A stretch of DNA of 64,000 nucleotides from Isurus oxyrinchus. Taxonomy: Eukaryota. Made by a program: the position numbers and the translations under genes. Numbering within the stretch: the stretch's first letter is position 1; each line of letters starts with the position of its first letter. The notes beneath the pieces were generated by a model. It made no database searches and was not told the DNA's origin. It saw only the letters and a program-made list of their open reading frames with translations. The stretch lies in NCBI GenBank assembly GCA_026770705.1, contig JANJGN010000052.1, positions 4,030,001 to 4,094,000 on the forward strand, written 5' to 3'. Positions 16,180 to 50,657 of the stretch are shown here, piece after piece.

Positions 16180-16319
16180 TTAAACAGTCTGTCGATTTCC
16201 TTTCACTGTTTGTCTCTCCCAGACACAGACTCCAGCGATAGTGATAACCACAGCCACAAGGAATATCACAGCTCGTATTCCCAGGATCAGGATCACGTGC
16301 AGAATCTCTCCTCCACTGT
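16180..16319 (-). CDS. Terminal TM exon with intramembrane Arg and short tail
   Basis: Acceptor tttctttctgtgtgttctctag; reads SGGEILHVILILGIRAVIFLVAVVITIAGVCVWERQTVKGNRQTV*; Arg codon at 16273-16275; no tyrosine in the tail. Confidence 0.8.
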
Positions 16320-17433
16320 CTAGAGAACACACAGAAAGAAATCATCACTGACTCTCCGCTTTCAATCTCTCACTCTGGCTGAACAATCAAGCTTCATATC
16401 ACTGCAACATTTGCTGTAATATTGACCCATTCACTGGGATTCAATGTGGAATGAATGTTTTCACTGTAAACACTCTAAGAGTGGACAATCGGAACTTTCC
16501 CCTTAGCATGGAACATTGGTGAGAATGGATCATTGTGCTGTTGGACTCTCTGTCCAATGTTTCTCTCCATCGCTGTGTACAGGATTGTGCTGTAGAAAAT
16601 TCTGGAAACGTTTAGTGCAGGGTGGAAATCCATCTCGGACGTGTGTGCGAATCGGGCAGGATCGAGATGGACTCCCCCACGGACTTACACCCCCCGCTTA
16701 ATAAACAGTTCCAATCTTTACCCAGAGAGAGGGGAGAATATGGAACTCGCTCCCACAGGGAATGGTTGAGGTGAATAGTAGCAAATTAGGAAGTGAAATT
16801 GCTTGAAAAGCTTGGAGATGCAAGGGTTAAGTGTTACCGTGCTACCACTGGTGGGAGAGTGTAACTACAGCGTGACGTTTACATAGGCAATCCCCATTAT
16901 GAACATGGACATCATGTGAAAAATGGGCACTGGAAAGCTGAGAACTTGATGTAAGCTTTTCAGCAACAGGAATTCCCTTCCTTAACCTCTCCACTTCCCT
17001 CTTATTCTCAGATACTCAAACAAAATTTCACACAAAATCACGTAAGGAGGAATTGGGACAGGTGACTGGTCAAAGAGTTAGATTTCAGGAAGGTTCTTAA
17101 AGTAGGATAGAGAGTTGGAGAGGCAGAGAGTATCTGTGAGTATCTCTGTGCATCTGAGTGTCTGTAATAGACTTTGCAATTTCCATATTCTTCCATAAAT
17201 ATGAAAGGGAACACAAATCCCAGAATCCAGGTCAACTCTCCGGTGCAGCACTGAGGGAGGTCAGGTAATCCACAGGGGAGTATGTGCTAGTGTGTTTGTT
17301 TGTGAGTGTGTCTTTGTGTGTGCTCATAGATGTGGGATTGTGTGTCTGCAGGTGTCTATTTAAGGCTGGATATTTATGTGTGTTTTTGTAGTGTTTCAAT
17401 CCGAGAGAGATGTTGAAGTTTGTCTTAACTAAC

Positions 17434-17585
17434 GTTCCACAGTGATGGTTATGAACCCCTCCACTGCTCCATGTTCATTCTCTGAGCACACTGATAGTCT
17501 CCAGTGTCCCTGGATGTAACGTGAGGAATCACCAACCACAGCTCATTGTTGGAACTTGTTCTGTTCATTGTGATATTCAGATGTC
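17434..17585 (-). pseudogene. Broken C2-set exon remnant (array-type C2)
   Basis: 3' half of the repeated C2 exon (HLNITMNRTSSNNELWLVIPHVTSRDTGDYQC); 1-nt deletion, 5' half missing, donor gttagt. Confidence 0.85.
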
Positions 17586-17908
17586 AGGACCGGACTCAAC
17601 AAGACAGATTGCAGGTTTACCAACAGAAAGTGAACAACAATTTATATTTAAAGGGAAGAGAGTGCTGGTTAATCAGCAAGTGGTCTCTGATTGGAGGAGG
17701 TGTTGCCATGGAAAATAATGTGTGTGAGATGTAAAGTTTAGACAGCTTGTCTCTTCATTCAGCAACAATCAAATAAAGATCAGTTAACTTCTATCGACTG
17801 TGAAGCACTTTGAGAGGCATGAGAATGTGGACACTGAGAACGGGCTGCACTGTCAGAGGGTCAGCGCTGAGGGAGTGCTGATGTAGAATGAAGGGTGTCT
17901 GTACTTAC

Positions 17909-18205
17909 CTTGCACAGTTAGTACGAGGGTCCGCTCCGATGAAACAGATGGATATCTCACTCTGCAGCTGAGAGTGTGTCTGTGGTGTTTGAGTGATGGG
18001 ATCAGGGTCAGAACAGAAGTATAGGTCAGAGTGACACCATGCTGAGTTACAGTGTTTGAGACTGATCCACGTACGTCAGTGGGAGTGTCCCAGGTTAAGA
18101 CAGGTGCTGCTGTTCCTTTGCACGTTGTGTTGAAGGTGCCGCTTACATCCACAGGCTTTCCTGCAATAATTTCAGCAGGGAATATCGTGGGTTTATCTGT
18201 GAAAT
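17909..18205 (-). CDS. Siglec C2-set domain 2 exon (activating paralog)
   Basis: 297 nt, AG/GT, phase 1-1; 92/99 aa identical to 38753-39049; B-strand Cys replaced by Gly. Confidence 0.85.
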
Positions 18206-18933
18206 CTAACACACCGAGAATGGATCCTTTTAGAGAAATATAACGTGAAGCATCAGTTCAAATAGAAATCACAGTCCCACAAGAAAAAGCACTTTTACAA
18301 GGATGATATCAGATCTGAGAGGTTACAATGATTAGGAGAGAATTTCCTGCTTTGAGACTTTGGTGTTTCTGTCTCTCAGCTTAATACACGTTCACTCCGA
18401 GACACCTGAACTGATAATAGTGGGTGAGGGTGGTGGAGCAGACCAGAGTTTGGAGTGCACTAACCCATCAGTCCCTCAGCGATCTGGGCCATTTTTTACT
18501 TTGCAATTTGTGGGAACTTGCTGTGTGCAAATTGGTTGTTGTGTTTCCCACATTACAATAGTAACTACAATTCAGGAATCAGCTCATTGGCTGTGAAGTG
18601 ATTTGGTCCATGCTGAGGTGGTGAAAGGTGCTACAGAAATGTGAATCTTTCTTCTGTCGCTAAGTCAGACTTCGAGACAGGATTAGAGAGATCGATAGGA
18701 GTGGATAACCTGATAACATTGATGGACACAGTCAATACATTTAATCATTGATATTAAAGTGAGTATTAGAGGTTGCTTTAGGAGTGAATTGGAAGCGATC
18801 ACCAGGTTATTGAGAATCAGACAGTGTGTTATAATAAGCTGTGTTTTGTGTTAATACGTAAACGTCACAGTTTGTGTTATTTCCCATTGAGTGTTGAATG
18901 TGAATTGTTGAGTAATTATAACACAGCACTTAC

Positions 18934-19299
18934 CAGAAACGTGAAGCTGGGTTACAGGGTAATAGTTATGGCTCGGACCATTGTCAAATTCTATTCTGAA
19001 AAAATAAGGTCCCGCATCTTCCCGTCTGATGTTGTTTATAATCAGGGAACAGACGCCATCTTTCAGGTCTCCAGACAGCCGGGTCCGATGGTGGAACCGT
19101 GGTAACTCGTGACTGTGATCCTTGGAGTGAAAGGCTATAGACGATGTTCTCCATTCCTCATTATTAAACCAGACTCCACCTCGCGGTTGGTTTTCCAGAC
19201 ACGATGGATAACTGTAATGACATGGAATCTGTACACACGAACCTTCCTGCACTGTCACCTCTCGTGGATTGTCACCTTTCCACTCTTGCGAGGGTTCAG
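18934..19299 (-). CDS. Siglec V-set exon (activating paralog)
   Basis: 366 nt, AG/GT; Siglec Cys pattern SCVQIPC...CSL; essential Arg in YFFRIE. Confidence 0.9.
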
Positions 19300-19344
19300 C
19301 TGGGGAGAGAAATCTCAATATTTAACTCTGAATGGTTTGTGGAT

Positions 19345-20150
19345 CCACTGAACCCGATATTTACAGATGAGGCTGAATTGGGGGGATGGTCAATACTGAG
19401 GAGAATGGCAACAAATTATATTGTCAGGAAGAATAGAAAAACAGGATATAATTTAAATGGAGACAGGCTGCAGAATGCAGTACAGAGGGATCTGGGTGTC
19501 CTGGTACATGAATCACAGAAAGTCAGCATTCAGGAACACCACGGAATGAGGAAGGCAAGTGGAATGTTGGCCTTTATTGCAAAGGGATGGAGTATAAAAG
19601 GAGGGAAGTCTTGCAACAGCTGCACAGGGCGTTGGTGAGATTGTAACAGGATCATTGTGTACAGGCAGTTCAGAGAAGCTTCACTGGGCTGATTCCTGGG
19701 ATTAAAGGGTTTGTCCTGTGAGGAAATGTTGAGCAGGTTGGGCCTGTATCCATTGGAGTTTAGAAGAATGAGGGGTGACCTTATTGAAACATATCCGATT
19801 CCGAGGGGGCTTGACAGGGTGGATGCTGGGAGGATGTTTCCCCCTCGTGGGAGAATCTAGAACCAGGGAGCACAGTTTCGGAATTAGGGCTCCCCCATTT
19901 AAGACTGAGATGAGGAGGAATTTCCTCTCTCAGAGGGGCGCTAGCCTGTGGAATTCTCTTCCCCAGAGAGCAGTGGAGGCTGGGCCATTGAATAGACTCA
20001 AGGCTGAGTGAGGCAGGTTTTTGATCGACAAGGGAGTCAAGGGTTTGGGGGACAAGCAGGAAAATGGAGTTAAGGCCGCAACCAGATCAGTGAGAGCAGG
20101 CTGGAGGGACCGAATGGCCTGCTCCTGTCCCTATTTCTTATGTTCCTACA
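19345..20150 (+). mobile_element. CR1 LINE 3' fragment between the two V exons
   Basis: QRDLGVLVHESQK, FLSQRGASLWNSLP and CR1 tail. Confidence 0.85.
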
Positions 20151-21030
20151 TTCTTACCTTCTTAAAATATTAAAGCTGCAGAATAAACATGCAAGTCAAT
20201 GACCCGCTCGACCCACCTTCCCTCTGGGGGTCCCATGGGGAGGACCCTTCCTGAGCCAGATCCACCAGCCAACATGGTCTAGATCTGAGCACAGGAGACA
20301 CGGGGGGTAGTGACTAACAGGCTCCTTGTGACAGGCCCCGTCTGTCCAATGGCTGGCTTTCAGCTGCCAAGGCCAGAGTTGTCCTTGCTAAAACTGGCTC
20401 AGGACAGGCCAGGACCCCTGTGCAGACCCCCTCCAGCGCTGCAGCCTCTGTACAAACCCCTCATGCGCTTGTGGAGAGACACAAACAAGGCTGCACATTA
20501 CCGAGGAGAATCCCCTCTACGGACTAAGGGGCTGACTCATCACCTTAAACTCAGCAAATGAGGAGGCTCTCACTCAGTATCGGGGCTTGGCATTGGCTCA
20601 ATAAAAATAAGAGCTGTTTCAGCACAGTGGCTGGGGTTGGGAACCTGATTGGAGGGATTCAAACATGGAGTTCCGGGAAAGATGGGAACGGATTCGGGAG
20701 ATGGAAACACGTTGCAGGACTTTGGAGGGGAAACAGAGGCTGGGGATGGGACGGGAGATTACACAGACAGTGTGAGGGGTGGAAGGTGTAGTGGGGAGGA
20801 GACACTTCACTCAGGGGGGAGGTGTCATCACCCCTCAGCTCGGTTTACGTTACAGCTATGATGTGGATTCAATCACACACAATAAGCTCATGGATCTGGG
20901 AGCAGAAATAGACAAATCATTAAAAATAGTGACGCTGGTTAACACGGCCAAAAAACAAGCAAATCAAACACTATTATTTCCCATTGAGTGTTGGATGTGA
21001 ATTGTTGAGTAATTATAACACAGCACTTAC

Positions 21031-21396
21031 CAGAAACATGAAGCTGGGTTTCAGGACGGTCGTTGTATCTATTCCTGCTGTCAAAATCTGTTCTGAATAA
21101 ATAATATCCTGCATCTTCCCATCTGATGTTGTTTATAATCAGGGAACAGTCACCATCTTTCAGGTCTCCAGAAAGCCGGGTCCGATGGTGGAACCGTGGT
21201 AACTCGCGACTGTGATCCTTGGAGTGAAAGGCTATAGACCATGTTTCCTAATTCCTTCTCATATACCAGATTCCAACAGGTGATCTCGGTACTAAATATG
21301 ATGGGTAGCTGTAATGACACGGAATCTGTACACACGAACCTTCCTGCGCTGTCACCTCTCGTGGAGTGTCACCTTTCCACACTTGTGGTAGTCCAG
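21031..21396 (-). pseudogene. Second V-set exon with one in-frame stop
   Basis: 366 nt with intact splice sites; TAG at 21248-21250 at the position of Trp in the other V exons; diverged loops. Confidence 0.88.
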
Positions 21397-21787
21397 CTAG
21401 GGGGAGAAATATCAATATTTAACTCTGAATGTTTTGTCAATCCACTAGACTCAAAATCCACCCCCTCCATCACTGGGGCACAGTGGCTGCAGTCTGGACT
21501 CACAATAAATGCCCCAATGTTTCACAACACATTGAAGAGAATCCTGGATACAGGAGTGGACAAGTTCATTCTACATTGGCTCATGGCCCTCAGGAACCTG
21601 TTTAGTGAAGCCAGTCTTCCACCCAACACAGTGTCTACAAGACACACTAATTGAAGTGAGTTCACTGCTGATTTACAAACTAGGACAATGGATTAGGAGC
21701 CTTCAGAATTCCCCCATTATCACCATCATGAATCATGAATTGGCCTAGCTGTCCTAGATCCTCAGTGTCTAAGGCAGTGGTTCCTAT

Positions 21788-22716: not shown

Positions 22717-22720
22717 CTGT

Positions 22721-25288: not shown

Positions 25289-25328
25289 CTTGGAGAAGTG
25301 ACAGGAGGAAGTAAGATTTCCCGATCAT
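25289..25328 (-). CDS. Leader (signal peptide) exon, activating paralog
   Basis: ATG MIGKSYFLLSLLQ + G|gtaata, phase 1; coding part identical to 34057-34096. Confidence 0.85.
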
Positions 25329-25778
25329 TGTCCACTCCCAGGTATTCCATCCACTTCTGACTCTCAAACTGTGAAAGAGAAAGGAGTTAATGAGACCTCA
25401 CCTCTTGTCCGACAGCTCTCGAGAGATCAGAACTGCTTTTAGACAATGTCTTCACTGACTAATTTGATTCTCTGTGGGATGATAGGTGCTCTGCAGAGAG
25501 TCACAAGACTTTAACAAAGAAAAACAATGAAGGGTTTGCATTTCTATAGCACCTTTCACCACCTCAGGATATCCCAAAGCTCATGTCCCTGCTCTTCCCT
25601 CATCCCTTGAGCTAGAAAGATGTTCTGTACAACAGACTTGAGCCTCACACCCAGATCTCAATAATCAGTAGAAATCTTTCAAAGGCATCAATCATTGGAA
25701 TCTGTCTTTATAAAGTCACAACATCAACAAAGGACGGTGTTGGTCGTGGAAGTGAATTCCAATCGTTCCGTTACTTAC

Positions 25779-25863
25779 CCAGGACCTGTCCGACTGCTCG
25801 CCTGGGGAGGAACTGCCCACACGCTCTGCTTGGGCAGAATGACCTCTTCCTGTGCTGCTCCCT
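25779..25863 (-). other. 85-nt exon-like cassette upstream of the leader (candidate 5' UTR exon)
   Basis: Donor gg|gtaagt; near-identical to 33540-33624 and 62383-62467. Confidence 0.6.
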
Positions 25864-25905
25864 CTGTGTGTTTAATTAGAAAGGGTGGATGTGTCACTGT
25901 GAGAC

Positions 25906-25919
25906 AAAATGAGGAAGTG
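25906..25919. promoter_or_regulatory. PU.1/ETS-like site
   Basis: aaaatgaggaagtg about 45 nt upstream of the 85-nt cassette; counterpart at 33486-33497 overlaps an AP-1-like tgactca (33497-33503). Confidence 0.4.
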
Positions 25920-26142
25920 GGTAACCAGTGAGAAGATTGAGGATGTTTTGTGCTCTCAGCAAAACGTTTACCATGTGATGATCTGTCAGCTCATATTTGG
26001 GCAGCTGTAGTCATGAAGCTTCTCCATTGGCTCTGTGGGGTTAGACCCCTTCCCCTCACCTCGGAGGCTGAAACTCAAGCGATAAGAGTTCCCAATACAG
26101 GTCTCTGGCCATATGGTCCATGTCGACAATCTGTGGTATCAT

Positions 26143-27010
26143 TACTGAGGGAGTGCTGCACTGTCAGAGGGTCAGTGCAGAGGGTATGCTGCAATGTTGG
26201 AGGGGTCAGTACTGAGTGAGTGCTGCACTGTCAGAGGGTCAGTAATGTGGGAGTGCTGCACCATCAGAGGGTCAGTGCTAAGGAAGTGCTGCACTGTTGC
26301 AGGGTCAGTATTGAGGGAGTGCTGCACTGTCAGAGGGTCAGTGAAAAGGGAGTGCTGCACTGCTGGAGGGTCAGTACTGAGGGAGTGCTGCACTGTCAGA
26401 GGGTCAGGGCTAAGGGAGTGCTGCACTGTTGGAGGGTCAGTACTGAGTGAGTGCTGCACTGTCAGAGGGTCAGTGCTAAGGCAGTGCTGCATTGTTGGAG
26501 GGTCAGTAGTGAGGGAGTGCTGCACTGTCAGAGGGTCAGGGCTAAGGGAGTGCTGCTCTGTTGGAGGGTCAGTACTGAGTGAGTGCTGCACTGTCAGAGG
26601 GTCAGTGCTAAAGCAGTGCTGCACTGTTGGAGGGTCAGTAGTGAGGGAGTGCTGCACTGTCAGAGGGTCAGGGCTAAGGGAGTGCTGCACTGATGGAGGG
26701 TCAGTACTGAGTGAGTGCTGCACTGTCAGAGGGTCAGTGCTAAGGAAGTGCTGCACTGTTGGAGGGTCAGTACTGAGGGAGTGCTGCACTGATGGAGGGT
26801 CAGTTCCGAGGGAGTGCTGCACTGTCAGAGGGTCAGTGCTAAGGAAGTGCTGCACTGTCAGAGGGTCAGTGCTAAGGAAGTGCTGCACTGTACAGAGGGA
26901 GTGCAAGACTGACAGAGGGTCAGTAATGAGGGAGTGTGAGACTGACAGAGGGTCACTATTGAGAATGTGCTGCACAGTCGGGGGGGTCAGTACTGAGGGA
27001 GCACTGCACT
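26143..27010 (+). repeat. 33-bp minisatellite
   Basis: About 26 copies of actgagggagtgctgcactgtcagagggtcagt. Confidence 0.92.
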
Positions 27011-27156
27011 GCCATAGGTGGTTTCTTTCAGATGACATGAGAGAGAGGGTTAAACCCACTGAGACAAGACTGACACTAACGAGGCTGCTCAATAATTTAG
27101 CCCTATCAGTGCCAGTAAATGATGTGAGGATGTCTTCTGTTTCCATTTCTCTGTAG

Positions 27157-27405
27157 GGTAAACAGAACGTGCTGATTTCTGAGCCCCGGAACACAACCAG
27201 AGACACAACTAGCGAGGGGGAGACCCCAGCTCCCCGGGGTCTCTCTGAAGGTGCATTGGGAGGCGATGCTGGACATTGGCACATCGACAATCCCGACGGC
27301 CTTCTCTACGCCAATCCCCAAGTATTGAGGATGTCCAGTGATGATGGGTCTGTCCACAGGGAAGAGGAGACGGAATACGCACAGATCAGGTTCGAGCATA
27401 ACTGA
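27157..27405 (+). pseudogene. Orphan Siglec terminal cytoplasmic exon, copy 1
   Basis: Acceptor ctctgtag; open for 82 aa; LLYANP and TEYAQI; no upstream + strand ectodomain in the window. Confidence 0.8.
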
Positions 27406-27974
27406 ATGAGAAATGGGGAGTGGGAGTGAGGAGGTGTGGGGGTGGGGGTAGTGATTGAGATTCCTGGGAACAGGAAACAACCCACTGGGGGAGAGGGGGA
27501 GAGAGGGAGGAAGGGATGGGATTGGGCTGCGGTTGGTGTGGTTTGGAATGAAATGCTTCTCCAGAGAGGACTGGATGCGGAGCCACTGGGGACCGAGATT
27601 CACTGTCTCTCTCTCTCGCTCTCTTGTTCTCTCTCTCCCTCTCTCTGTCTTTCTTTCTGTGTCTGTCTCTCATTCTCTATCTCCAGCTCCTCCTTTAAGA
27701 TGCCCGTTAATAACTGACTTTGTTGACTCAGCTGTTGGTCTCCTGTCCCTAATATCTCCTCATGTGCCTCAGAGTCAGGTGAAGATGTGACTAACAATTC
27801 CCGGATGAGCCTTGGGACATTTTGCTACATTAAAGGTGCTATATAAATGCAAGTAGTTGCAGTAAGTCTGATCTGCTTCGATTAACAATGGAACTACAAA
27901 GGCTCCTTCGACAGGGCGTGTGTGCAGGAGGATCCCAATAAATACATTGTGCTGTGAGATTTTTAATTCTTACA

Positions 27975-28430
27975 TCGAATGTGGCTGTCACTGGTGATAC
28001 CAGCATTAATGCCCATCCCTAATTGCCCTTGAGAAGGTGGTGGTGATCAGCCTTCTTGACCCGCTGCAGTCCATGTGGTGTAGGTACACCCACAGTGCTG
28101 TTAGGGAGGGAGCTCCAGGATTTTGACCCAGTGACAGTGAAGGAACGGTGATATATTTCCAAGTCAGGATGGTGAGTGACTTGGAGGGGAACTTCCAGGT
28201 GGTGGTGTTCCCATGTGTCTGCTGCCCTTGTCCTTCTAGATGGTAGAGGTCGTGGGTTTGGAAGGTGCTGTTGAAGGAGCCTTGCTGAGTTGCTGCAGTG
28301 CATCTTGTAGATGGTACACACACTGCTTCCACTGTGTGCTCGTTGTGGAGGGAGTGAATGTTTAATGTGGGGGATGGGGTGTAGATCAATCGGGCTGCTT
28401 TGTCCTGGATGGTGTCAAGCTTCTTGATTC
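27975..28430 (-). mobile_element. CR1-clade LINE 3' end
   Basis: SFTVTGSKSWSSLP...HHHLLKGN and the shared tail. Confidence 0.85.
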
Positions 28431-28560
28431 TGTGCTTTGTATAGAACTGATTTAAAGAGACAGTCCCAGTCGTTGGTCTAAGATTACAGTGGGCTCTGTG
28501 TCTGTGCTACACTGACTCTCTGCTATATGATAACCACAGTGTGATATTGTGTTATTGCAG

Positions 28561-30091: not shown

Positions 30092-30340
30092 GGTAAACAG
30101 AACGTGCTGATTACTGAGCCCCGGAACACAACCAGAGACACAACTAGCGAGGGGGAGACCCCAGCTCCCCGGGGTGTCTCTGAATGTGCAGTGGGAGGCG
30201 ATGCTGGACATGGGAACCCTGACAATCCCGACGAGCTTCTCTACGCCAATCCCCAAGTCTTCAGGGTGCCCAGTGGTGATGGGTCTGTCCACAGGGAAGA
30301 GCAGACGGAATACGCACAGATCAGATTCAAGAGAAACTGA
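30092..30340 (+). pseudogene. Orphan Siglec terminal cytoplasmic exon, copy 2
   Basis: Open for 82 aa; DELLYANP and TEYAQIRF. Confidence 0.8.
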
Positions 30341-34056: not shown

Positions 34057-34096
34057 ATGATCGGGAAATCTTACTTCCTCCTGTCACTTCTCCAAG
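34057..34096 (+). CDS. Leader exon
   Basis: MIGKSYFLLSLLQ + G|gtaaga, phase 1. Confidence 0.85.
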
Positions 34097-37528: not shown

Positions 37529-37894
37529 TTGGACTGTCACAAGAGTGGAAAGGTGACACTCCACGAGAGGTGACAGCGCAGGAAGGTTCCTGTGTACAGA
37601 TTCCATGTCATTACAGTTATCCATCACATTTGGAAAAGCAACCACGAGTTGGAATCTGGTTTAATAATGAGGAATGGAGAACATCGTCTATAGCCTTTCA
37701 CTCCAAGGATCACAGTCACGAGTTACCTCGGTTCCACCATCGGACCCGGCTGTCTGGAGACCTGAAAGATGGTGACTGTTCCCTGATTATAAACAACATC
37801 AGACGGGAAGATGCAGGACCTTATTTTTTCAGAATAGAATTTGACAGCAGAAATAAATACAGCTACTATCCTGTAACCCAGCTTCACGTTTCTG
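37529..37894 (+). CDS. Siglec V-set sialic-acid-binding exon
   Basis: QEWKGDTPREVTAQEGSCVQIPCHYSYP...GDCSL...YFFRIEFDSRNKYSY; Arg codon at 37831-37833. Confidence 0.93.
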
Positions 37895-38752: not shown

Positions 38753-39049
38753 ATTTCACAGATAAACCCATGATATTCCCTGCTGAAATTATTGCAGGAA
38801 AGCGTGTGGATGTAAGCTGCACCTTCAACACAATGTGCAATGGAACAGCAGCACCTGTCTTAACCTTGGACACTCCCACTGACGTACGTGGATCAGTCTC
38901 AAACACTGTAACTCAGCATGGTGTCACTCTGACCTATACTTCTGTTCTGACCCTGATCCCATCACTCAAACACCACGGACACACACTCAGCTGCAGAGTG
39001 AGATATCCATCTGTTTCATCGGAGCGGACCCTCGTACTAACTGTGCAAG
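38753..39049 (+). CDS. C2-set domain 2 exon
   Basis: 297 nt, phase 1-1; VSCTFNTMC...LSCRV; C-strand Trp replaced by Leu. Confidence 0.9.
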
Positions 39050-39268
39050 GTAAGAATGGACACCCTTCATTCTACATTAGCTAGAAAGCTCTACATAGTA
39101 CATTGCAAGATCCCACAACTGCATTGCGTTTAGCAACAAATCAATAGTCTTTAACTGATACAAATTCACCTCTGACACTGCAGCAGTCCCTGAATACTGA
39201 TTCTCCAACACTGCAGCACTCCCTCAGTACTGAGTCTTGTTCACAATGAAATCTTTAATTGTTCTTAG

Positions 39269-39361
39269 ATGTACCACAGAATCTCTCATTTACTTCGCTT
39301 GATATGATTAATGCTTCATCGATCAATATAATTGAGGGGTTCATAACCATCACTGTGGAAT
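39269..39361 (+). CDS. In-frame 31-codon mini-exon (internally deleted C2)
   Basis: Both splice sites kept; 189 nt deleted between two GAGGGG motifs. Confidence 0.6.
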
Positions 39362-40020
39362 GTGAGTTAATGCAAACTTCAACATCACTCACACACACGC
39401 ACACACACACACACACACACACATGCAGAAACACACACAATCTCAACTCACACAAGCACACACACACACACATGCATAGACAGACACACGTGCGCACACA
39501 CACACAAACACACATGAGTGCGTGCACACACACAGATCCTTATTTTACAGAAACATACACACACAAGCCAACACACACATACACACACAAAAACATGTGG
39601 GTTCCCTCTCCTCTCCCAGTGCTGCACTCAGTATCAGCTCCGAATCTGTGTTGATGAAAGGTAAACTCCAGATCATCAAGACACTGAACTGGATGGAGCA
39701 ACCTCCTGAAGAGTGAATTGTAGATTTACCCCTCAGTGCTCCATTGGTCAAATACAATTCATTGCCTTTGAAGCCCTTGGGGACATCCTGAGGATCTGAA
39801 AGGGAGTTTCCTGCATTCTAGATGGACACCTCCACTGGTGGGAGAATGTAACTGCAGTGTGACAGTTTACATAGGCAGTGCCCATTGTAAATGTGAAATA
39901 AGTTCTTATCCTGAGGGAATGTACCTGGAAATGCATTCAGACATCAGATACAGAGACATGATGCATGGAGTCTTGCTGTGCACTATATTTGCTCATATTA
40001 AAATCTTTCTATGTTTATAG

Positions 40021-40302
40021 ATGCACCACGGAATCTCTCAATTACTTCTCTTGATATGATTAACGCTTTATCGATCGATGTAATTGAGGGGAATTCTGCA
40101 GTGATAATCTGCTCTGTCGAGAGCTTCCCAGCTTCTAACCTGACGTGGCGACATCTTAATGTCCCAATGAACAGAACAAGTTCCAGCAATGAGCTGTGGT
40201 TGGTGATTCCTCACGTTACATCCAGGGACACTGGAGACTATCAGTGTGTGGCAGAGAATGTATATGGAGCAGTGGAGGGGTTCATAACCATCACTGTGGA
40301 AC
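40021..40302 (+). CDS. Repeated C2 exon 1
   Basis: 282 nt, phase 1-1; IICSVESFPASNLTW...DTGDYQCVAEN. Confidence 0.9.
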
Positions 40303-40328
40303 GTGAGTTACTGCAAACTTCAACATCA

Positions 40329-40365
<37 letters not shown>

Positions 40366-40972
40366 ACACACGTGCACACTACTCATAAACATACACACAC
40401 ATTCACTCATGCACAGAAATATACACAAAGACACACTCACATATGCGCAAACACATACACACATGCACACACAGACGCATGCGTGCATACTCACACAAAC
40501 ACACTCACATGTGCAGAAACACAAACACAAACACATACACACACATGAGGTCCCTCTCCTCTCTCAGTGCCGCACTGGAGTCTTGGTATCAGCTCTGATT
40601 CTGTGTTGAAGGAAGGTAAACTCCAGATCAGCAAGACCCTGAATTGGATGAGCAACCTCCTGAACAGAGAAATGTAAATTTACCCCTCAGTGCTCCATCA
40701 ATCAAATACAATTCATTCCCGTAAATCCCTTGGCAAAATCTTGAGGATGTGAAAGTTTCTTTCATTCTAGGTGGACAGCACCTCTACTGGTGGGAGAATG
40801 TAACTGTAGTTTGACTGTTTACATAGGCAGTGCCCATTATAAATTTGACAGTGGAAGTTATATGGAGGGAAGGTACCTGGAATTGCATACAGACATCAGA
40901 TACAGAGAGATGATGCATGGAGTCTTGCTGTAAATTGTGCTTGCTCACATTAAACACTTGATTTGTTTTTAG

Positions 40973-41254
40973 ATGCACCACAGGATCTCTCATTTACTTC
41001 ACTTGAAATGATTAATGCTTCATCAATCAATATAATTGAGGGGAATTCTGCAGTGATAATCTGCTCTGTCGAGAGCTTCCCAGCTTCTAACCTGACGTGG
41101 CGACATCTTAATGTCCCAATGAACAGAACAAGTTGCAACAATGAGCTGTGGTTGGTGATTCCTCATGTTACATCCAGGGACACTGGAGACTATCTGTGTG
41201 TGGCAGAGAATGAACATGGAGCAGTGGAGGGATTCATAACCATCACTGTGGAAT
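40973..41254 (+). CDS. Repeated C2 exon 2
   Basis: 282 nt; extra Cys (TSCNNEL). Confidence 0.9.
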
Positions 41255-41997
41255 GTGAGTGCACACAGACATCTACATCACACAAACACACACACACATG
41301 CAAAAACACTCATGTGTAGACACAAACATGCACGCTTACACACAAACATACGTTCAAACACATACACAGAAACACACACAAACTCAACTCACACATACAA
41401 TCATTCATGCGCACACGTAGACACACGTATACACACACACTCCCTCAAGCACAGATGTACACACGCAGACCCACATACACACGCGTGCCCACACATGCGC
41501 AGACAGACACGCGCATACACACAAATACAAACTCACTTGTGCAGAAATACACACACACACACAAGTGTGAGATCCCTCTCCTCTCTCAGTGCTGCACTGG
41601 AGTCTTGGTATCAGCTCTGATTCTGTGTTGAAGGAAGGTAAACTCCAGATCAGCAAGACCCTGAATTGGATGAGCAACTTCCTGAACGGAGAATTGTAGA
41701 TTTACTCCTCAGTGCTCCATCGATCAAATACAATTCACGGGCTTTCAATCCCTTGGGGGCATCTTGAGAGTGTTAAAGGATGTTTGTTTCATTCTAGGTG
41801 GACAGCAACTCTGTTGGTGGGAGAATGCAACTGCAGTGTGACAGTTTACATAGGAAGTGCCCATTATAAATGTGACAGTATTTTTTCCTGCGGGAAGGTA
41901 CCTGGAAATGCATTCCAACATCAGATACAGAGAGATGATGCATGGAGTCTTGCTGTGCACTGTGCTTGCTCACAGTAAAATCTTTATTTGTTTTTAG

Positions 41998-42279
41998 ATG
42001 CTCCACAGAATCTCTCAATTACTTCTCTTGATATGATTAATGCTTCGTCGATCAATATAATTGAGGGGAATTCTGCAGTGATAATCTGCTCTGTCGAGAG
42101 CTTCCCAGCTTCTAACCTGACGTGGCGACATCTTAATGTCCCAATGAACAGAACCAGTTCCAACAATGAGCTGTGGTTAGTGATTCCTCACGTTACATCC
42201 AGGGACACTGGAGACTATCAGTGTGTGGCAGAGAATGAACATGGAGCAGTGGAGGGGTTCATAACCATCACTGTGGAAT
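41998..42279 (+). CDS. Repeated C2 exon 3
   Basis: 282 nt, AG/GT. Confidence 0.9.
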
Positions 42280-43019
42280 GTGAGTTAACGCAAACTTCAA
42301 CATCACTCACACGCACACAGACACACACACACACACACACACAGACACATGTAGGCACACACATGCATAATTATACACACACAGTCATACACGTACAAAC
42401 ACATACACAGGAAAATACACACCCATCTCAAACACACACATATTCATGCCCACACATAGACACACACATGCACATACTCTCACTCATGGACAGACGTAGA
42501 CACACAGACACACGCGCATGCACACACACAGATACATGTGTGCATACACACACAAACACACTCACATGTGCAGTAACACAAACACACACATACACACGCG
42601 TGAGTTCTCAGTGCTGCACTGGAGTCTTAGTATGAGTTCCGATTCTGTGTTGAAGGAAGGTAAACTCCAGATCAACAAGACCCTGAATCGGATGAGCAAC
42701 CTCCTGAACAGAGAATTGTAGACTTACCCCTCAGTGCTCCATCGATCAAATACAATTCATTGCCTGTCAAGCCCTTGGGGACATCCTGAGGATGTGAAAG
42801 CAAACTTCTTTCATTCTAGATGGGCAACACCTCTGCTGGTGGGAGAATGCAATTGCAGTGTGACAGTTTACATAGGCAGTGTCAATTATAAATGTGCCAT
42901 AAGACCTTATCCTGAGGGAAGTTACCTGGAAATGCATTCAGACATCAGACACAGAGACATGATGCATGGCGTCTTGTGCACTATGTTGCTCACGTTAAAA
43001 TCTTTATATATATATATAG

Positions 43020-43301
43020 ATGCATCATTGAATCTCTCAATTAATTCTCTTGATATGATTAACGCTTCATCAATCAATATAATTGAGGGGAATTCTGCAG
43101 TGATAATCTGCTCTGTCGAGAGCTTCCCAGCTTCTAACCTGACGTGGCGACATCTTAATGTCCCAATAAACAGAACAGGTTCCAACAATGAGCTGTGGTT
43201 GGTGATTCCTCACGTTACATCCAGGGACACTGGAGACTATCAGTGTGTGGCAGAGAATGAACATGGAGCAGTGGAGGGGTTCATAACCATCACTGTGGAA
43301 C
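43020..43301 (+). CDS. Repeated C2 exon 4
   Basis: 282 nt; polypyrimidine tract replaced by (TA)n. Confidence 0.8.
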
Positions 43302-43347
43302 GTGAGTTAATGCCAACTCAACATCTCTCTCATACACGCACACACAC

Positions 43348-43405
<58 letters not shown>

Positions 43406-44114
43406 ATGTGTAGACACATACGTGCACATTTACACACACAGTCATACACGTGCAAAAACAGACACAGAAACACACATACACTCAACTCACACGCACACAC
43501 TCACACAGGCACACATATAGACATACACATGCACTCACGTTCACTCATGCACAGACGTATACACAAAGACACACTCACATATGCGCAAACACATACACAC
43601 ACGCACACACAGACACATGCGTGCATACACACACAAACACACTCACATGTGCAGAAACACAAACACACACATACACACGCATGAGGTCCCTCTCCTCTCT
43701 CAGGGCTGCACTGGAGTCTTGGTATCAGCTCCGATTCTGTGTTGAAGGAAGGTAAACTCCAGATCAACAAGACCCTGAATTGGATGGAGCAACCTCCTGA
43801 ACAGAGAATTGTAGACTTACCCCTCAGAGCTCCATCGATCAAATACAATTCATTGCCTATCAAGCCCTTGGCAAAATCCTGAGGATGTGCAAGGAAGTTT
43901 CTTTCATTCTAGGTGAACAGCACCTCTACTGGTGGGAGAATGTAACTGTAGTTTGACTGTTTACATAGGCAGTGCCCATTATAAATTTGACAGTGGAAGT
44001 TATATGGAGGGAAGGTATCTGGAAATGCATACAGACATCAGATACAGAGAGATGATGTATGGAGTCTTGCTGTGCATGCTGCTTGCTCACATTAAAAACT
44101 TTATTTGTTTTTAG

Positions 44115-44396
44115 ATGCTCCACAGAATCTCTCAATTAATTCTCTTGATATGATTAATGCTTCATCGATCAATATAATTGAGGGGAATTCTGCAGTGATA
44201 ATCTGCTCTGTCGAGAGCTTCCCAGCTTCTAACCTGACGTGGGGACATCTTAATGTCCCAATGAACAGAACAAGTTCCAACAATGAGCTGTGGTTGGTGA
44301 TTCCTCATGTTACATCCAGGGACACTGGAGACTATCAGTGTGTGGCAGAGAATGAACATGGAGCAGCGGAGGGATTCATAACCATCACTGTGGAAC
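44115..44396 (+). CDS. Repeated C2 exon 5
   Basis: 282 nt, AG/GT. Confidence 0.9.
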
Positions 44397-45373
44397 GTGA
44401 GTTAACACAAGCTTCAACATTACTCTCACATATACACAGTCACACTCATACACACACACACACACACACACGTGCACACAAACAAGCATTCATGTGCAAT
44501 CCCACATGTCCACAGGTGTGTACACCTGCATGCTCACACACAGAAGGAAACATACACAGAATCACACGTGTGCTTGCTCACACACACACACACAGACATG
44601 TGTGAGTTGTCTGTTCTCCCTGTGCTGCACTGGAGCGTTGCTCCAGATTCTGCTCTGAAACACTGACGACATCAGCTGAACAAGACCCTGTATTGGACGA
44701 GCAGCCCCCTGCACAGAGAATTGTAGGTTTATCACCCCATTATTCTAAAGCAATTCCTCCACTGTCAAATCTCCATAAATATCCTGATGATGTGAAAGAC
44801 ATTTTCTTTTCTTCTAGCCCGACAGTGTCTCCTCTGGTGGAAGGCTGTAATTACAGCGTGACAGTTTACATATCCACATGCAGCAAGAGCTGAACAACAC
44901 TCAGCTTGGGCTGAGACAATTAATGCATCACAAGTACCAGGCAGTGATCATGTCCAACAAGAGAGAATCTAACCATCTCCCCTTGATGTTCAGTGAGTTT
45001 ACTATCACAGAATCCCCCACAATCAACATCCTGGGGGATGTTAACCAAACAACTAACTGGACCGGCCATAAATACTGTGGCTACAGGAGCCGGTCAGAGG
45101 CTGGGAATTCTGTGGGGGTGAAAAACTCACCACCACCTCCTCAAGGGCAATTAGGGATGGGTAATAAATGCTGGTCTAGATAGATACAGCTACTTCCCAT
45201 GAATGTACAAAAAGAAAAACACCGGCAGTGACCATTATAAAAGTTGACATAGGAACTTAAAACAGGAAAGAACTCTTGAAATGCACATAGACACCAAATA
45301 GAGAGAGATGTATCATGGAGTCTTGCTGTGCACTGTGTTTGCTCACAATGAAACCACCTTTATTTGTATCTAG

Positions 45374-45655
45374 ATGCACCACGGAACCCATCAATTACTT
45401 CTCTTGATATGATTAACGCTTCATCGATCAATATAATTGAGGGGAATTCTGCAGTGATAATCTGCTCTGTCGAGAGCTTCCCAGCTTCTAACCTGACGTG
45501 GCGACATCTTAATGTCCCAATGAACAGAACAAGTTCCAACAATGAGCTGTGGTTGGTGATTCCTCACGTTACATCCAGGGACACTGGAGACTATCAGTGT
45601 GTGGCAGAGAATGAACATGGAGCAGTGGAGGGGTTCATAACCATCACTGTGGAAC
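45374..45655 (+). CDS. Repeated C2 exon 6
   Basis: 282 nt, AG/GT. Confidence 0.9.
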
Positions 45656-46414
45656 GTGAGTTACTGCAAACTTCAACTTCACTCACACACACACACACAC
45701 ACACACATACACACACACACACACGTGTAGGCACACACATGCACACTTATACACACACAGTCATACACGTGCAAACACATACAGAGGAATATATATACAC
45801 AACTCACACACACACACACATTCATGCCCACACATAGACACACACATGCACATTCACTCACTCTTGGACAGACATTGACACACAGACATGCGTGCATGCG
45901 CACACACAGATACATGTGTGCATACACACACAAGCACACTCACTTCTGCAGAAACACAAACACTCACACACTCTCACACATACACAAATATGAGTTCCCT
46001 CTCCCCTCTCAGGGTGCACTGGAGTCTCGGTATCAGCTCTGATTCTGTGTTGAACGAAGGTAAACTCCAGATCAACAAGTCCCTGAACTGGAGGAGCAAC
46101 TTTCTGAACAGAGCATGGTAGATTTACCCCTCAGTGCTCCATCAATCAAACATTGCCTGTCAAGCCCTTGGCGAAATCCTGAGAATATGAAAGCAAGCTT
46201 CTTTCATTCTAGAGTGACAACACCTCTACTGGTGGGAGAATGCAATTGCAGTGTGACAGTTTACATAGGCAGTGTCCATTAAAAATGTGGCATAAGACCT
46301 TATCTTGAGGGAAGTTACCTGAAAATGCATTCAGACATCAGATACAGAGACATGATGCATGGAGTCTTGCTGTGCACTATGTTTGCTCACGTTAAAATCT
46401 TTATATGTTTTTAG

Positions 46415-46696
46415 ATGCACCACGGAATCTCTCAATCAATTCTCTTGATATGATTAACGCTTCATCGATCAATATGATTGAGGGGAATTCTGCAGTGATA
46501 ATCTGCTCTGTCGAGAGCTTCCCAGCTTCTAACCTGACGTGGCGACATCTTAATATCCCAATGAACAGAACAAATTCCAACAATGAGCTGTGGTTGGTGA
46601 TTCCTCACGTTACATCCAGGGACACTGGAGACTATCAGTGTGTGGCAGAGAATGAACATGGAGCAGTGGAGGGGTCCATAACCATCACTGTGGAAC
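46415..46696 (+). CDS. Repeated C2 exon 7
   Basis: 282 nt, AG/GT. Confidence 0.9.
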
Positions 46697-47361
46697 GTGA
46701 GTTACTGCAAACTTCAACATCACTCACACACACACACATACACACACAGACACACACACACACACACGCACACACACACACACGCACACACATACACATA
46801 AACAGGTGCACGTAAACATGCGTTCATATTTAATCCCATGTCTGCACAGGTGTGCACGCCTGTATGCTCACACACAGAAGCATACATACAGAATCACACG
46901 TGTGCTTGCTCACACACACACACAGACATGTGTGCGTTGTCTGTTCTCCCTGTGCTGCACTGGAGTGTTGCTGCAGATTCTGCTCTGAAACACTGACGAC
47001 ATCAGCTGAACAAGACCCTGTATTGGACGAGCAGCCCCCTGCACAGAGAATTGTAGATTTATCACTCAATACCCCATTATTCTAAAGCAATTCCTCCACT
47101 GTCAAATCCCTGTGAACATCCTGATGATGTGAAAGACATTTTCTTTTCTTCTAGCCTGACAGTGTCTCCTCTGGTGGAAGGCTGTAATTACAGCGTGACA
47201 GTTTACATATCCACACGCAGCAAGAGCTGAGCAACACTCAGCTTGGGCTGAGAAATGACAATTAATGTTCATGCCACACAAGTACCAGGGAGAGCTGTTC
47301 CTTGTATTGACCCTTGGGATTGTTTATCCCAACTTGATAGGGCAAAGGGGGCCCAGGTTGT

Positions 47362-47428
47362 GACTATCAGTGTGTGGCAGAGAATGAACATGGAGCAGTG
47401 GAGGGGTTCATAAGCATCACTGTGGAAT
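47362..47428 (+). pseudogene. 3' remnant of a C2 exon
   Basis: DYQCVAENEHGAVEGFISITVE|gtgagt; 5' part missing. Confidence 0.8.
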
Positions 47429-48247
47429 GTGAGTGTGGAGATACATTTGTTTGTTTGTTGTCTCCGTGGTCTCCGTGGAGCCATTGGGATCGTGTTGTTT
47501 TTAATCCAGTTTTCTTCAATCCTCGCTCAGTCCACGTTATCCACACATCCAATTTTTCCTCTCCCTTTCTGTTTTTGCTCTCAGTTTCTCCTTCAATGGT
47601 TGTCAGGACAAGGCTGTCAGGTCTTCGTTTCCAATCTCCATACTTGATGACCTTTCTCTCTCTAACTGTCCTGAACAACCCTTTTAATTGCTGAACTTCT
47701 CATTCTTTAATTGATAAATATTATATATAAATGTTACATGGATTACTTTGAAATGCAATACCTGTATTCATAAATTGCTTAGAAATGACTAAACATTCAA
47801 CAGCCAATGAAGCATTATCGAAGTGAGCTCACTGTTGTAAAGGAGGAAACACAGGTACTGATTTGTACACAGCAAGATCCCACAAACCACCGTGTCTTAA
47901 TGACCTGATAGGCGATTATTTCAATGAGGTTGGTTGTTTAATGTGTAGAGAGACTACATACCCTTTAGGGAGGGAAGCATGTCTCGATGTGGATGTGACT
48001 CCAGTCTCAGACACCAACATGGTTAACTCACACCTGCCCTGTGAACTGGTCTCCCAGTTTGGGACAAACCAGTGGATCAGGAGGAAGACCCCCCACCACC
48101 TTCTCAAGGGGAAACTAGGGATGGACAATAAATGTCAGCATTGCCCGAGAATGAGTATTTAAACACTGAGTGAGTGTATCGCTTCTCGAGATACATCGGA
48201 GCATCATTGTAAACCTGTAGTGCAGTAATTAATGGCTGTTTTTACAG

Positions 48248-48344
48248 GTAGAGACTCCAGTAAAGGGACAGTAGGATTGTTCACGGCTGGGATCATGTTG
48301 AGTGTTTTCCTGGCTGGAATCTTCATCTTCATCTGTGTGAGAAA
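48248..48344 (+). CDS. Transmembrane exon (uncharged)
   Basis: 97 nt, phase 1-2; RDSSKGTVGLFTAGIMLSVFLAGIFIFICVRK. Confidence 0.88.
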
Positions 48345-49038
48345 GTAAGTCTGAAGATTTAACTTGATTTTAATATAAACATTTGCTTCAATGTTCTTTC
48401 CTGAAGTCGGTGATTGTTTCCCTTGTGTTAAGCGCCAGATGCCTCTCCCTAACTGGTCTCTTTATCCGTTATGATCCAGAGAGTGTTTTTCATTGCCCGT
48501 TATCCAGATGAATAATAATCAGTTGCTGTGATCTGGAAGGTGCTGCCTGAAAGGGCGCTGGAAGCAGATTCAATAGGAACTTTCAAAAGGGGAATTGGAT
48601 AAATACTTGAAGGGGGAACATTTGAAGGGCTATGGGGGGAAGAGCAGGGGTGGAGGGGGGGTAAAAGATATGGCGTGTTATTATAATGATATTATACCTT
48701 AGGCTTATTTACTGTATAAGACAGAAAACACCAATCACTCATAGGGGATTTGGTGAGAATATTAATGATTTGTTTATCAAGACTCGGCACGAGAACAGTT
48801 ATACATACGAAGAAAGCTTGAAGGCATCAGAGCTGTGAGTGTGTGTTCTGCTCAAAGCAAATGTCAAACTGAGATTGGATCACATGACACACTTCCATTA
48901 TAGTGATGTCACGCTGATACCCCTTATTGGAACTAGAGACAGTCCAGTCGTTGGTGTAAGGTTACAGTGGGCTCTGTGTCTGTGCTGCACTGACTCTCTG
49001 CTATATGATAACCACAGTGTGATATTGTGTTATTGCAG

Positions 49039-49120
49039 GAGAAAGACAGCAATGGAGGAGAGAGGTTCAGGGACCAATTACATTGCATTGACCCTCAGGT
49101 CACTCTCTGTGAAGCACCAG
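49039..49120 (+). CDS. Cytoplasmic exon 1
   Basis: 82 nt, phase 2-0; RKTAMEERGSGTNYIALTLRSLSVKHQ. Confidence 0.82.
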
Positions 49121-49332
49121 GTACAGGAACTGTTTACACTCACTCCAAAGCTTCAACCTCAGTGTGTACACAACACGTATACCAGATTCTCAGCCGGGTT
49201 ACACACAGATATCGCCCTGTGAAGTCAGCAATGGCTCAGTGGTCAGCACTGTCTCTCGCTCCCTGCCTCTGTCTCCCTCCATCACTCGCTCTTTGACCAG
49301 AAACCTGAACACAATAATGACAAGGCACCTGA

Positions 49333-50220
49333 TGTCAGTACTGAGGGAGTGCTGCACTGTCAGAGGGTCAGTAGTGAGGGAGTGCTGCACTGTCGGAGTG
49401 TCAGTACTGAGGGAGTGCTGCACTGTCGGAGGGTCAGTACTGAGGGTGTGTTGCACTGTCAGAGGATCAGTACTGAGGGAGTGCTGCACTGTTGGAGGGT
49501 CAGTACTGAGGGAGTGTTGCACTGTCAGAGTGCCAGTACTAAGGGAGTGTTGCACTGTCAGAGGGTCAGTACTAAGGGAGTGCGGCACTGTCGGAGGGTC
49601 AGTACTGAGGGAGTGTTGCACTGTCAGAGGGTCAGTACTGAGGGAGTGCTGCACTGTCGGAGGGTCAGTACTGAGGGAGTGCTGCACTGTCAGAGGGTCA
49701 GTTACTGAGGGAGTGCTGGACAGTCGGTGGGTCAGTACTGAGGGAGTGCTGCACTGTCTGATGGTCAGTACTGATGGTGTGCTGGACGTTTGGAATATCA
49801 GCACTGAGGCAGTGCTGCACTGTCAGAGGGTCAGTACTGAGGGAGTGCTGGACTGTCAGAGGGTCAGTACTGAGGGAGTGCTGCACTGTCAGAGGGTCAG
49901 TACTGAGGGAGTGCTGCACTGTCAAAGGGTCAGTACTGAGGGAGTACTGCACTGTCGGAGGGTCTGTAGTGAGGGAGTGCTGCACTGTCAGAGGGTCAGT
50001 ACTGAGGGAGTGCTGCACTGTCAGAGGATCAGTATTGAGGGAGTGCTGCACTGTCAGAGGGTCAGTATTGAGGGAGTGCCGCACTGTCAGAAGGTCAGTA
50101 CTGAGGGAGTGCTGCACTGTCAGAGGGTCAGTGCTGAGGGAGTGCTGCACTGTCAGAGGGTCAGTTGTGAGGGAGTGCTGCACTGTCAGAGGGTCAGTAG
50201 TGAGGGAGTGCTGCACTGTT
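49333..50220 (+). repeat. 33-bp minisatellite in the last intron
   Basis: About 27 units. Confidence 0.92.
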
Positions 50221-50408
50221 GCAGTGCGATAGAGATTAAATTATTAAGAGAGAGAGAAAGCGAGATAGAAAGATGACAGAGAAAGAGAGTGAAAAAAAGG
50301 CTTAAACGCTCTGAGCCACGACTGACACTAACGAGGCTGCAGAATAATTTAACCCTATCAGTGCCAGTAAATGATGTGAGGATGTCTTCTGTTTCCATTT
50401 CTCTGTAG

Positions 50409-50657
50409 GGTAAACAGAATGTGCTGATTACTGAGCCCCAGAACACAACCAGAGACACAACTAGTGAGGGGGAGACCCCAGCTCCCCGGGATCTCTCTGA
50501 AGGTCCAGTGGGAGGCGATGTTGGACATGGGAACCCCGACAATACCGACGACCTTCTCTACGCCAACATCAACTTTTCAAAGCTGCCCAGCGGTGACAGG
50601 ACTGTGCACAGGAGCGAGGACACGGAATACACACAGATCAGGTTCCAGAAAAACTGA
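50409..50657 (+). CDS. Terminal cytoplasmic exon with ITIM and ITSM-like motif
   Basis: DDLLYANINF and EDTEYTQIRF before the stop; same arrangement as CD33-related Siglec tails. Confidence 0.9.
   Translation, partial: GKQNVLITEPQNTTRDTTSEGETPAPRDLSEGPVGGDVGHGNPDNTDDLLYANINFSKLPSGDRTVHRSEDTEYTQIRFQKN

Follow-up and report, generated by a model that had tools for sequence, protein, structure and literature searches.

Two divergent receptor genes of Isurus oxyrinchus, probably an activating-type and an inhibitory member of an elasmobranch Siglec-type family

Do sharks possess Siglec-type receptors in which an inhibitory form is matched by an activating one? Paired inhibitory and activating Siglecs are textbook examples of the arms race between host and pathogen, and to our knowledge they have been described in mammals only. 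The question is raised by a 64,000-nucleotide (nt) stretch of the Isurus oxyrinchus genome (GenBank assembly GCA_026770705.1, contig JANJGN010000052.1, positions 4,030,001 to 4,094,000 of the forward strand; hereafter the window, numbered from its first letter), in which a first-pass annotation made from the letters alone had described a head-to-head pair of Siglec-like genes. The two genes considered here are gene A, on the minus strand from 25328 to 16180, and gene B, on the plus strand from 34057 to 50657. The two are probably linked genes of one large elasmobranch receptor family of the Siglec type (CD33-like), with A of the activating type and B inhibitory, and the family would have evolved by the shuffling of exons and cassettes.

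The start codons of A and B are divergent and lie 8.7 kb apart. All coding exons of both genes are of phase 1-1, as is usual for genes of the immunoglobulin (Ig) superfamily, and are bounded by canonical AG/GT sites. Gene A, whose last exon carries a transmembrane (TM) segment, is laid out as follows.

25289..25328, minus strand: leader, coding part, encoding MIGKSYFLLSLLQ followed by G; GTAATA donor below 25289
21031..21396, minus strand: V1 exon, 366 nt, V-set, with a YLFR arginine and intact splice sites
18934..19299, minus strand: V2 exon, 366 nt, Siglec-type V-set, with the YFFR arginine and C21, C26 and C83
17909..18205, minus strand: C2-set exon; in the assembly the B-strand Cys (18140) is Gly, and the codon at 18154 is Pro
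17399..17583, minus strand: relic of an Ig-repeat exon, 3' half only, frameshifted at about 17485 and bypassed by the splice from C2 to TM
16180..16319, minus strand: last exon, Arg-containing TM segment (ILILGIRAVIF...) and tail, stop codon at 16182-16180

Gene B encodes nine Ig domains, and ends in a tail with an immunoreceptor tyrosine-based inhibitory motif (ITIM) and a motif resembling an immunoreceptor tyrosine-based switch motif (ITSM).

34057..34096, plus strand: leader, coding part, with a GTAA donor
37529..37894, plus strand: V-set exon, 366 nt, with YFFR and KYSY
38753..39049, plus strand: C2-set exon, both cysteines present, C-strand Trp changed to Leu
39269..39360, plus strand: deleted Ig exon, 92 nt after an internal deletion
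40021..46696, plus strand: seven intact 282-nt Ig exons (I-set/Ig_3), phase 1-1, AG/GT
48248..48344, plus strand: TM exon reading (C)RDSSKGTVGLFTAGIMLSVFLAGIFIFICVRK, with the uncharged span VGLFTAGIMLSVFLAGIFIFICV
49039..49120 (approximate), plus strand: cyt1 exon, RKTAMEERGSGTNYIALTLRSLSVKHQ
50409..50657, plus strand: last exon, with the ITIM LLYANI, the ITSM-like TEYTQI and the stop codon

The two tails are of opposite kinds. In gene B the order is LLYANINF, 19 residues, then TEYTQIRFQKN, behind an uncharged TM segment. The last exon of gene A has an AG acceptor, is entered in phase 1 and encodes DSGGEILHVILILGIRAVIFLVAVVITIAGVCVW ERQTVKGNRQTV and a stop; there is one Arg within the hydrophobic span, and the 12-residue tail ERQTVKGNRQTV contains no tyrosine. 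This contrast had been proposed in the first-pass annotation and was reproduced in each of its particulars. The V1 exon of gene A, the seven further Ig exons of gene B and three orphan tail exons of the spacer were absent from that annotation. Gene B combines a Siglec V domain with a C2 domain, a stalk of seven near-identical Ig domains and a tail expected to recruit SH2 phosphatases. Gene A would take its V and C2 domains from the same duplicated unit and splice its C2 exon straight to the Arg-TM cassette, the usual architecture of a receptor predicted to reach the surface and signal only with a separate adaptor that has an acidic TM segment and carries either an ITAM (immunoreceptor tyrosine-based activation motif) or YxxM. 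No Pfam family was matched for either tail, and a search of the ESM Atlas with the 45-residue TM exon returned sub-threshold matches only.

Gene B looks intact, in that every exon used is open and in phase. Its seven Ig exons (starting at 40021, 40973, 41998, 43020, 44115, 45374 and 46415) are 95-97% alike, with a ratio of nonsynonymous to synonymous differences per site (pN/pS) of 0.47. The exon at 39269-39360 must be skipped, since its length is not a multiple of three. Each of the seven exons is followed by a (CA)n or TG-rich microsatellite (40303-47300, plus strand), the repeat units measure 952-1259 bp, and an eighth, 5'-truncated copy of the Ig exon lies at 47362-47434. Only two such domains are present in the great white shark model P0176, so that stalk length may vary by species or be collapsed in other assemblies. 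In gene A, the V2, C2 and TM exons have open frames and intact splice sites. The V1 exon holds an in-frame TAG at 21250-21248 where the remaining V exons read TGG (a single TGG>TAG change), and with V1 skipped gene A specifies an intact 278-residue receptor of two Ig domains. Genes A and B carry one unusual substitution each in the C2 core. In B the codon at about 38866 is Leu (TTG), where gene A, the great white shark and the other family members read the conserved Trp (LTW); in A the Pro at 18154 stands three codons upstream of the Gly that replaces Cys.

The assignment of both genes to the Siglecs rests on sequence and on fold. Searches were run exon by exon rather than on the joined spliced protein. 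Among structures in the Protein Data Bank (PDB), the top 17 matches to the V domain were all Siglecs (E-values from 5.6e-16 to 6.5e-12), the best being Siglec-5 (5.6e-16), CD33, sialoadhesin, Siglec-8, MAG, Siglec-10 and Siglec-7. The YFFRIE of A-V2 and B-V aligned with YFFRVE of Siglec-5 and YFFRME of CD33, which contain the sialic-acid arginine. This residue, R101, is at least 90% conserved among 41 family members, as are C21, C26 and C83, and the cysteine pattern of Siglec V domains (CxxxPC in the B strand, an E-strand Cys and no F-strand Cys) is present in both A and B. In the second domain, where Siglecs carry an extra Cys for an interdomain bond, gene B reads SCTFNTMC...LSC and the assembled gene A reads SGTFNTTC, having lost the B-strand Cys that RNA contigs retain. 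Pfam assigned V-set and Ig_CD22 to the V exons, C2-set_2 to the second exon and Ig_3/I-set to the repeats. Furthermore, an AlphaFold model of A V2 reached a mean confidence (pLDDT) of 87.8, and its top 45 Foldseek matches were all Siglec V domains (TM-score 0.80-0.88). Both sequence and predicted fold therefore place the V domain with those of Siglecs, as the first-pass annotation had held, and it would be expected to bind sialic acid.

Splicing onto the Arg-TM exon was followed in four sequencing runs (X1, X2, X5 and X6), presumed to be RNA and drawn from three studies and two organisms, whose contigs were aligned over 15900-21600. The joint 16319|17909 occurs in all four runs and is bordered by CT..AC, that is, GT..AG on the minus strand; the joint 18205|18934 likewise occurs in four of four as GT..AG on the minus strand. 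In these contigs exons are covered 8-11 times as deeply as introns. Identity to the window is about 99% for contigs of the TM exon and 3' untranslated region and 95-98% for intron contigs. The contigs show that C2 is spliced to the Arg-TM exon at this locus or in a very close relative. Thus both 18934>18205 and 17909>16319, junctions predicted in the first-pass annotation, were seen, and spliced contigs reach the 16319-16180 exon, contrary to an outcome that the annotation had named as refuting it. Assignment of the C2 contigs to gene B was rejected, since they differ from A at 4-5 positions and contigs of B would do so at 6-8. At 21395, loose ends resembling a leader depart by 2 nt from that of A and are probably from paralogues. 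In run X2, a V1-type exon is connected at its end to a V2-type exon in one contig (19288-21031), and the opening 11 nt of that V2-type exon are B-like (TTGGACTGTCA). The RNA source thus contains transcripts with two tandem V domains, which probably come from a paralogue resembling P0004 of the basking shark.

Relatives of A and B were gathered by scanning 1.8 billion representatives with HMMER and then looking up clusters. The nearest are elasmobranch RefSeq models named CD33-like, Siglec-8/10/12/13/14 or MAG-like, from Carcharodon, Cetorhinus, Scyliorhinus, Mustelus, Chiloscyllium and several rays, which bears out an early guess that the DNA came from a cartilaginous fish. Exons are 88-98% identical to great white and basking shark models, in keeping with a shark source that is probably lamniform. 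A and B form one locus within a large multigene family and not an isolated pair. The Arg-TM cassette recurs in at least nine annotated shark proteins. In the great white shark it is found, 93% identical to the last exon of gene A, in P0187, P0173 and P0169, which are named CD33-like or Siglec-12 and built as V2-C2-TM or V1-V2-C2-TM; P0187 has the V2-C2-ArgTM order and a TM core identical to that of gene A. It is also present in Scyliorhinus torazame (P0006, XP_072326180; P0064; P0158), S. canicula (P0190, named 'Siglec-14 isoform X2', and P0206) and Chiloscyllium punctatum (P0021, XP_072409577). Across these proteins ILGIRA/GIF does not vary, and most of the tail E(R/G)QTVKG(S/N)RQTV is conserved. 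The cassette spans three galeomorph orders (Lamniformes, Carcharhiniformes and Orectolobiformes), and none was found among the ray models listed. The receptor design is conserved in sharks and is already present in automatic annotations.

In a quick maximum-likelihood tree of 151 V domains, the elasmobranch sequences form a clade of their own, and a fully supported tetrapod clade (CD33, Siglec-8 and Siglec-12) excludes them. The deeper forks do not place the shark clade nearer to CD33-related Siglecs, to MAG or to CD22. Flanking genes from outside the family were not identified within the window. The evidence for a very ancient system concerns the Arg-TM cassette, given its presence in three orders, and not the pairing of A with B.

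How, then, are A and B related to each other? Their leaders are identical over 40 of 40 nt. The V exons (A V2 against B) match at 106 of 121 full codons and differ at one split codon, which gives 106/122, with 90.9% nt identity; the C2 exons match at 89 of 96 residues over DKP..TVQ, or 92 of 99 with DFT included, with 97.2% nt identity. These figures agree with those first reported for the two divergent genes. The likeness is not due to chance, as both genes lie within an inverted segmental duplication in which 17.4-25.9 kb and 33.5-39.1 kb are 86-93% identical, introns included. Overall, exon identity is close to intron identity, as expected of an old duplicate. Within it, the C2 exons differ at 8 of 288 nt (1 synonymous and 7 nonsynonymous) with a synonymous divergence (dS) of 0.013, and their flanks are about 88% identical. 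The ratio of nonsynonymous to synonymous rates (dN/dS) between V2 of A and V of B is 0.35. The V exon of gene B is a mosaic, V1-like in its upstream intron and 5' end and V2-like in its centre and downstream intron, which is consistent with a fusion of V1 and V2 plus patches of exchange. Gene conversion, which the first-pass annotation had named as what keeps the primate pair similar, has local signals here in the low C2 dS and the V mosaic of B; these are patchy, and there is no general homogenisation.

Among known systems, SIGLEC5/SIGLEC14 and SIGLEC11/SIGLEC16 had been named as models for the shark pair, and the comparison is sound as regards linked genes with opposite tail types, less so as regards the matching of the partners and the length of their ectodomains. 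Like A and B, SIGLEC5 and SIGLEC14 are linked genes with a similar V and first C2 domain, one with an ITIM plus TEY..I tail and the other with a TM Arg and short tail, and both pairs bear signs of sequence exchange between partners. However, the human genes are in tandem and nearly identical over their first two domains, whereas A and B are divergent, 87% identical in V and 93% in C2, with seven extra Ig domains in B. A match as close as that of Siglec-5/14 is consequently not borne out (87% protein identity in V; nine against two Ig domains). Coupling to DAP12 has been demonstrated for Siglec-14, whereas adaptor coupling of gene A is predicted from its form. An origin independent of SIGLEC5/14 is indicated by the position of the shark V domains outside the tetrapod CD33-related clade. 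SIGLEC11/SIGLEC16 resembles A/B in its inverted arrangement, its inhibitory and activating tails, signs of conversion confined to the 5' exons and homology that ends before the TM exon. In contrast, SIGLEC11/16 is kept at over 99% identity by conversion, is recent and primate-only, and Siglec-16 has a TM lysine where gene A has Arg.

Closer counterparts are the shark RefSeq (Gnomon) models with the same V2-C2-ArgTM build as gene A and TM cassettes 80-93% identical to it, although their names are borrowed from human proteins and several have wrong starts; these models are probably orthologues or close paralogues of gene A. The tetrapod CD33 and Siglec-7/8/9/12 proteins share with the shark family a V-set fold with the arginine and the cysteine pattern, a second domain of the C2-set type and a bipartite tail with LxYAxLxF...TEYSEI near the C-terminus. 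The gene B motif, LxYAxIxF...TEYxxI, has the layout found in Tupaia CD33, Siglec-12 of the monkey Rhinopithecus, Siglec-8 of the bat Artibeus and turtle and frog relatives. Nevertheless, the shark V domains form a separate clade, and many shark members have 2-5 tandem V domains. Teleost LITRs and NITRs, as well as PILR-alpha/beta, offer the same multigene mixture of ITIM tails and short-tailed forms with a charged TM segment that use ITAM adaptors, but their ectodomain families differ from the shark one, and LITRs and NITRs lack a Siglec-type V domain. The concept of paired receptors has been reviewed (PMC13358205), and fish have been described as having only Siglec-1, CD22, MAG and Siglec-15, with CD33-related Siglecs lacking (PMC7226832).

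The locus and its RefSeq matches show that elasmobranchs own a large Siglec-type family with CD33-like ITIM/ITSM tails and a conserved Arg-TM form spliced as predicted. We infer from these forms sialic-acid binding, adaptor coupling and opposite signalling; A and B may or may not act on one ligand, and a part in countering sialylated pathogens, as suggested in the first-pass annotation, is speculative. If function follows form, an activating twin that balances recognition of sialic acid as 'self' would have evolved at least twice in jawed vertebrates. A further reading, offered tentatively, is that sharks have an old paired Siglec system, independent of the mammalian one and predating the galeomorph split, in which one cassette of Arg-TM and 12 residues makes adaptor-coupled activating receptors. 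If this were true, the adaptor would be a yet-to-be-found chain in a lineage in which FcR-gamma has been reported missing, the published view of fish without CD33-type inhibitory Siglecs and activating counterparts would be overturned, and the origin of ITAM-adaptor signalling would become testable in cartilaginous fish. A search of the literature found no paper on shark or cartilaginous-fish Siglecs, on paired Siglecs outside mammals, or on the pairing or function of the RefSeq models. The value of the finding is tempered by the presence of these genes in automatic annotation, and any ligand or adaptor is putative.

Several observations weigh against A and B as working partners. The 15 of 121 V residues that differ are clustered at 33-42 (the C-C' region) and at 105-111, beside the key arginine; these are likely ligand-contact segments and, taken with the very unequal ectodomain lengths, imply that A and B may not share a ligand. 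The ratio of seven nonsynonymous to one synonymous change in C2 and the loss of the C-strand Trp in gene B are both compatible with relaxed constraint. Because they diverge by 2-3% from the window, the RNA contigs are taken to represent different individuals, different species or very close paralogues, and in all four runs they read Cys at 18140 and Arg at 18154, which means that the expressed sequences differ from the assembled allele of gene A. Other contigs, from paralogues, align at 17432-17585 with an extra A and run into an uncharged TM or another Ig exon. The V1 exon is spliceable, and its inclusion would truncate the frame of gene A at the TAG. The great white models that include V1 (P0173 and P0169) start at an internal Met inside it.

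From such points it could be argued that gene A is a decaying copy, a recent inverted duplicate drifting towards a pseudogene rather than the working partner of B, with activating-type members kept elsewhere in the family. The TAG within a well-spliceable V1, the Gly and Pro found in the assembly and absent from the RNA contigs, the half-deleted and frameshifted Ig exon at 17399-17583, the excess of nonsynonymous C2 differences and the internal starts of the great white orthologue models P0173 and P0169 all fit this explanation. We nevertheless regard it as unlikely. The V2, C2 and TM exons of gene A remain open with good splice sites, dN/dS between V2 and the V of B is 0.35, the skipping of V1 leaves an intact receptor, great white P0187 shares the identical TM core, and the spliced contigs are 99% identical to gene A over its TM exon and 3' untranslated region. 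The assembled gene A copy may be decaying in the sequenced individual, though the design may work in the family.

The interpretation of A as activating also meets the objection that no FcR-gamma was found in shark genomes in a 2014 survey (PMC4016189). On this basis the Arg-TM form might send no signal and act as a decoy, competing for ligand with its inhibitory relatives, or its Arg might serve another membrane partner, and the conservation of the 12-residue tail across orders may hint at a function of its own. This alternative appears highly improbable, given that receptors with a buried basic residue and a short tail are adaptor-dependent in all vertebrate families studied, including Siglec-14/15/16, KIR, PILR-beta and teleost LITRs (PMC13358205), and that the invariant ILGIRA/GIF core is what pairing with an adaptor would constrain.

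The head-to-head order depends on the assembly of the spacer between A and B, which contains the following features.

27157..27402, plus strand: orphan cyt2a exon, with LLYANP (ITIM lost) and TEYAQI kept; matches residues 363-440 of great white P0161
28541..28666 (approximate), plus strand: orphan copy of the cyt1 exon, RKTAMEERVSGTSDIALTPSPLSVKHQ
30092..30337, plus strand: orphan cyt2b exon, with LLYANP and TEYAQI; 90% identical to the tail of great white P0018
30540..30721, no strand: assembly gap, intergenic, touching no exon and crossed by no reading frame

Genes A and B lie on different contigs of the scaffold, on either side of this gap, and the spacer holds a satellite found at seven or more sites in the window; both facts count against the arrangement. 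The order could accordingly be an artefact in which real genes were joined wrongly, either in the 33-bp satellite (26139-27018) or across the gap. Upstream of the tail exons at 27157-30337 the same strand carries neither TM nor ectodomain exons, and great white P0161 joins such exons to a V-C2-TM gene, which again favours a mis-join. However, the left flank of the gap (29844-30537) aligns directly to 26908-27602 and the right flank (30724-30962) to 27711-27949. Since both flanks are collinear, in the same orientation, with an internal paralogous copy, the scaffold join is probably right in order and orientation. The paralogous copy of the gap site is a purine-rich simple repeat of about 108 nt, and the satellite sits inside one gap-free contig. 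An artefact of this kind is thus very doubtful, and the head-to-head arrangement of A and B is likely. A mis-assembled haplotype, also raised at the outset, was rejected, as the arms are 86-93% identical rather than more than 98%, have diverged by about 10% and differ in exon content.

In great white P0161, a double cyt cassette stands behind a V-C2-TM gene in one protein. The orphan tail exons of the window appear to be remnants left stranded when the 5' part of an inhibitory gene was inverted or replaced; a plus-strand gene 'C' that might own them was rejected, there being no V, C2 or TM exons upstream on that strand. The satellite precedes each orphan cyt2 exon, and in gene B it lies between cyt1 and the last exon. 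Its 33-bp arrays are located at 5635-5912, 7920-8152, 15094-15448, 26139-27018, 29640-29953, 49335-50220 and 57591-58475 (inverted). They are 80-88% alike, three stand directly upstream of a cyt2 (ITIM/ITSM) exon, and gene A is flanked on both sides. This minisatellite is a candidate both as a substrate for rearrangement and as a source of mis-assembly. The locus as a whole illustrates the mechanics of the family: inverted duplication, fusion of V exons, tandem growth of stalk exons, stranded tail cassettes and a minisatellite at breakpoints.

Some minor features complete the window. The leader exons contain an upstream ATG in another frame (MEYLGVDNDREILLPPVTSP) at 25289-25350 (minus strand) and 34038-34096 (plus strand); as the great white RefSeq models P0018 and P0166 begin with the MEYLGVDNDREILLPPVTSP peptide, these are probably mis-started annotations. 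A third tail type, with a TM exon and YxN-type cytoplasmic exons as in P0012 and P0007, lies at 61265-61366, 62375-62467 and 63834-63950 on the plus strand. Relics of its middle exon are found about 450 nt upstream of both leaders (25779-25859, minus strand; 33544-33639, plus strand), and 25614-25934 is 96% identical to 62312-62632, closer than the A and B arms are to each other. Downstream of gene B there are further gaps at 56979-57409 and 59529-59677, beside the satellite array in inverted orientation and a fragment of an Ig exon at 59944-60021.

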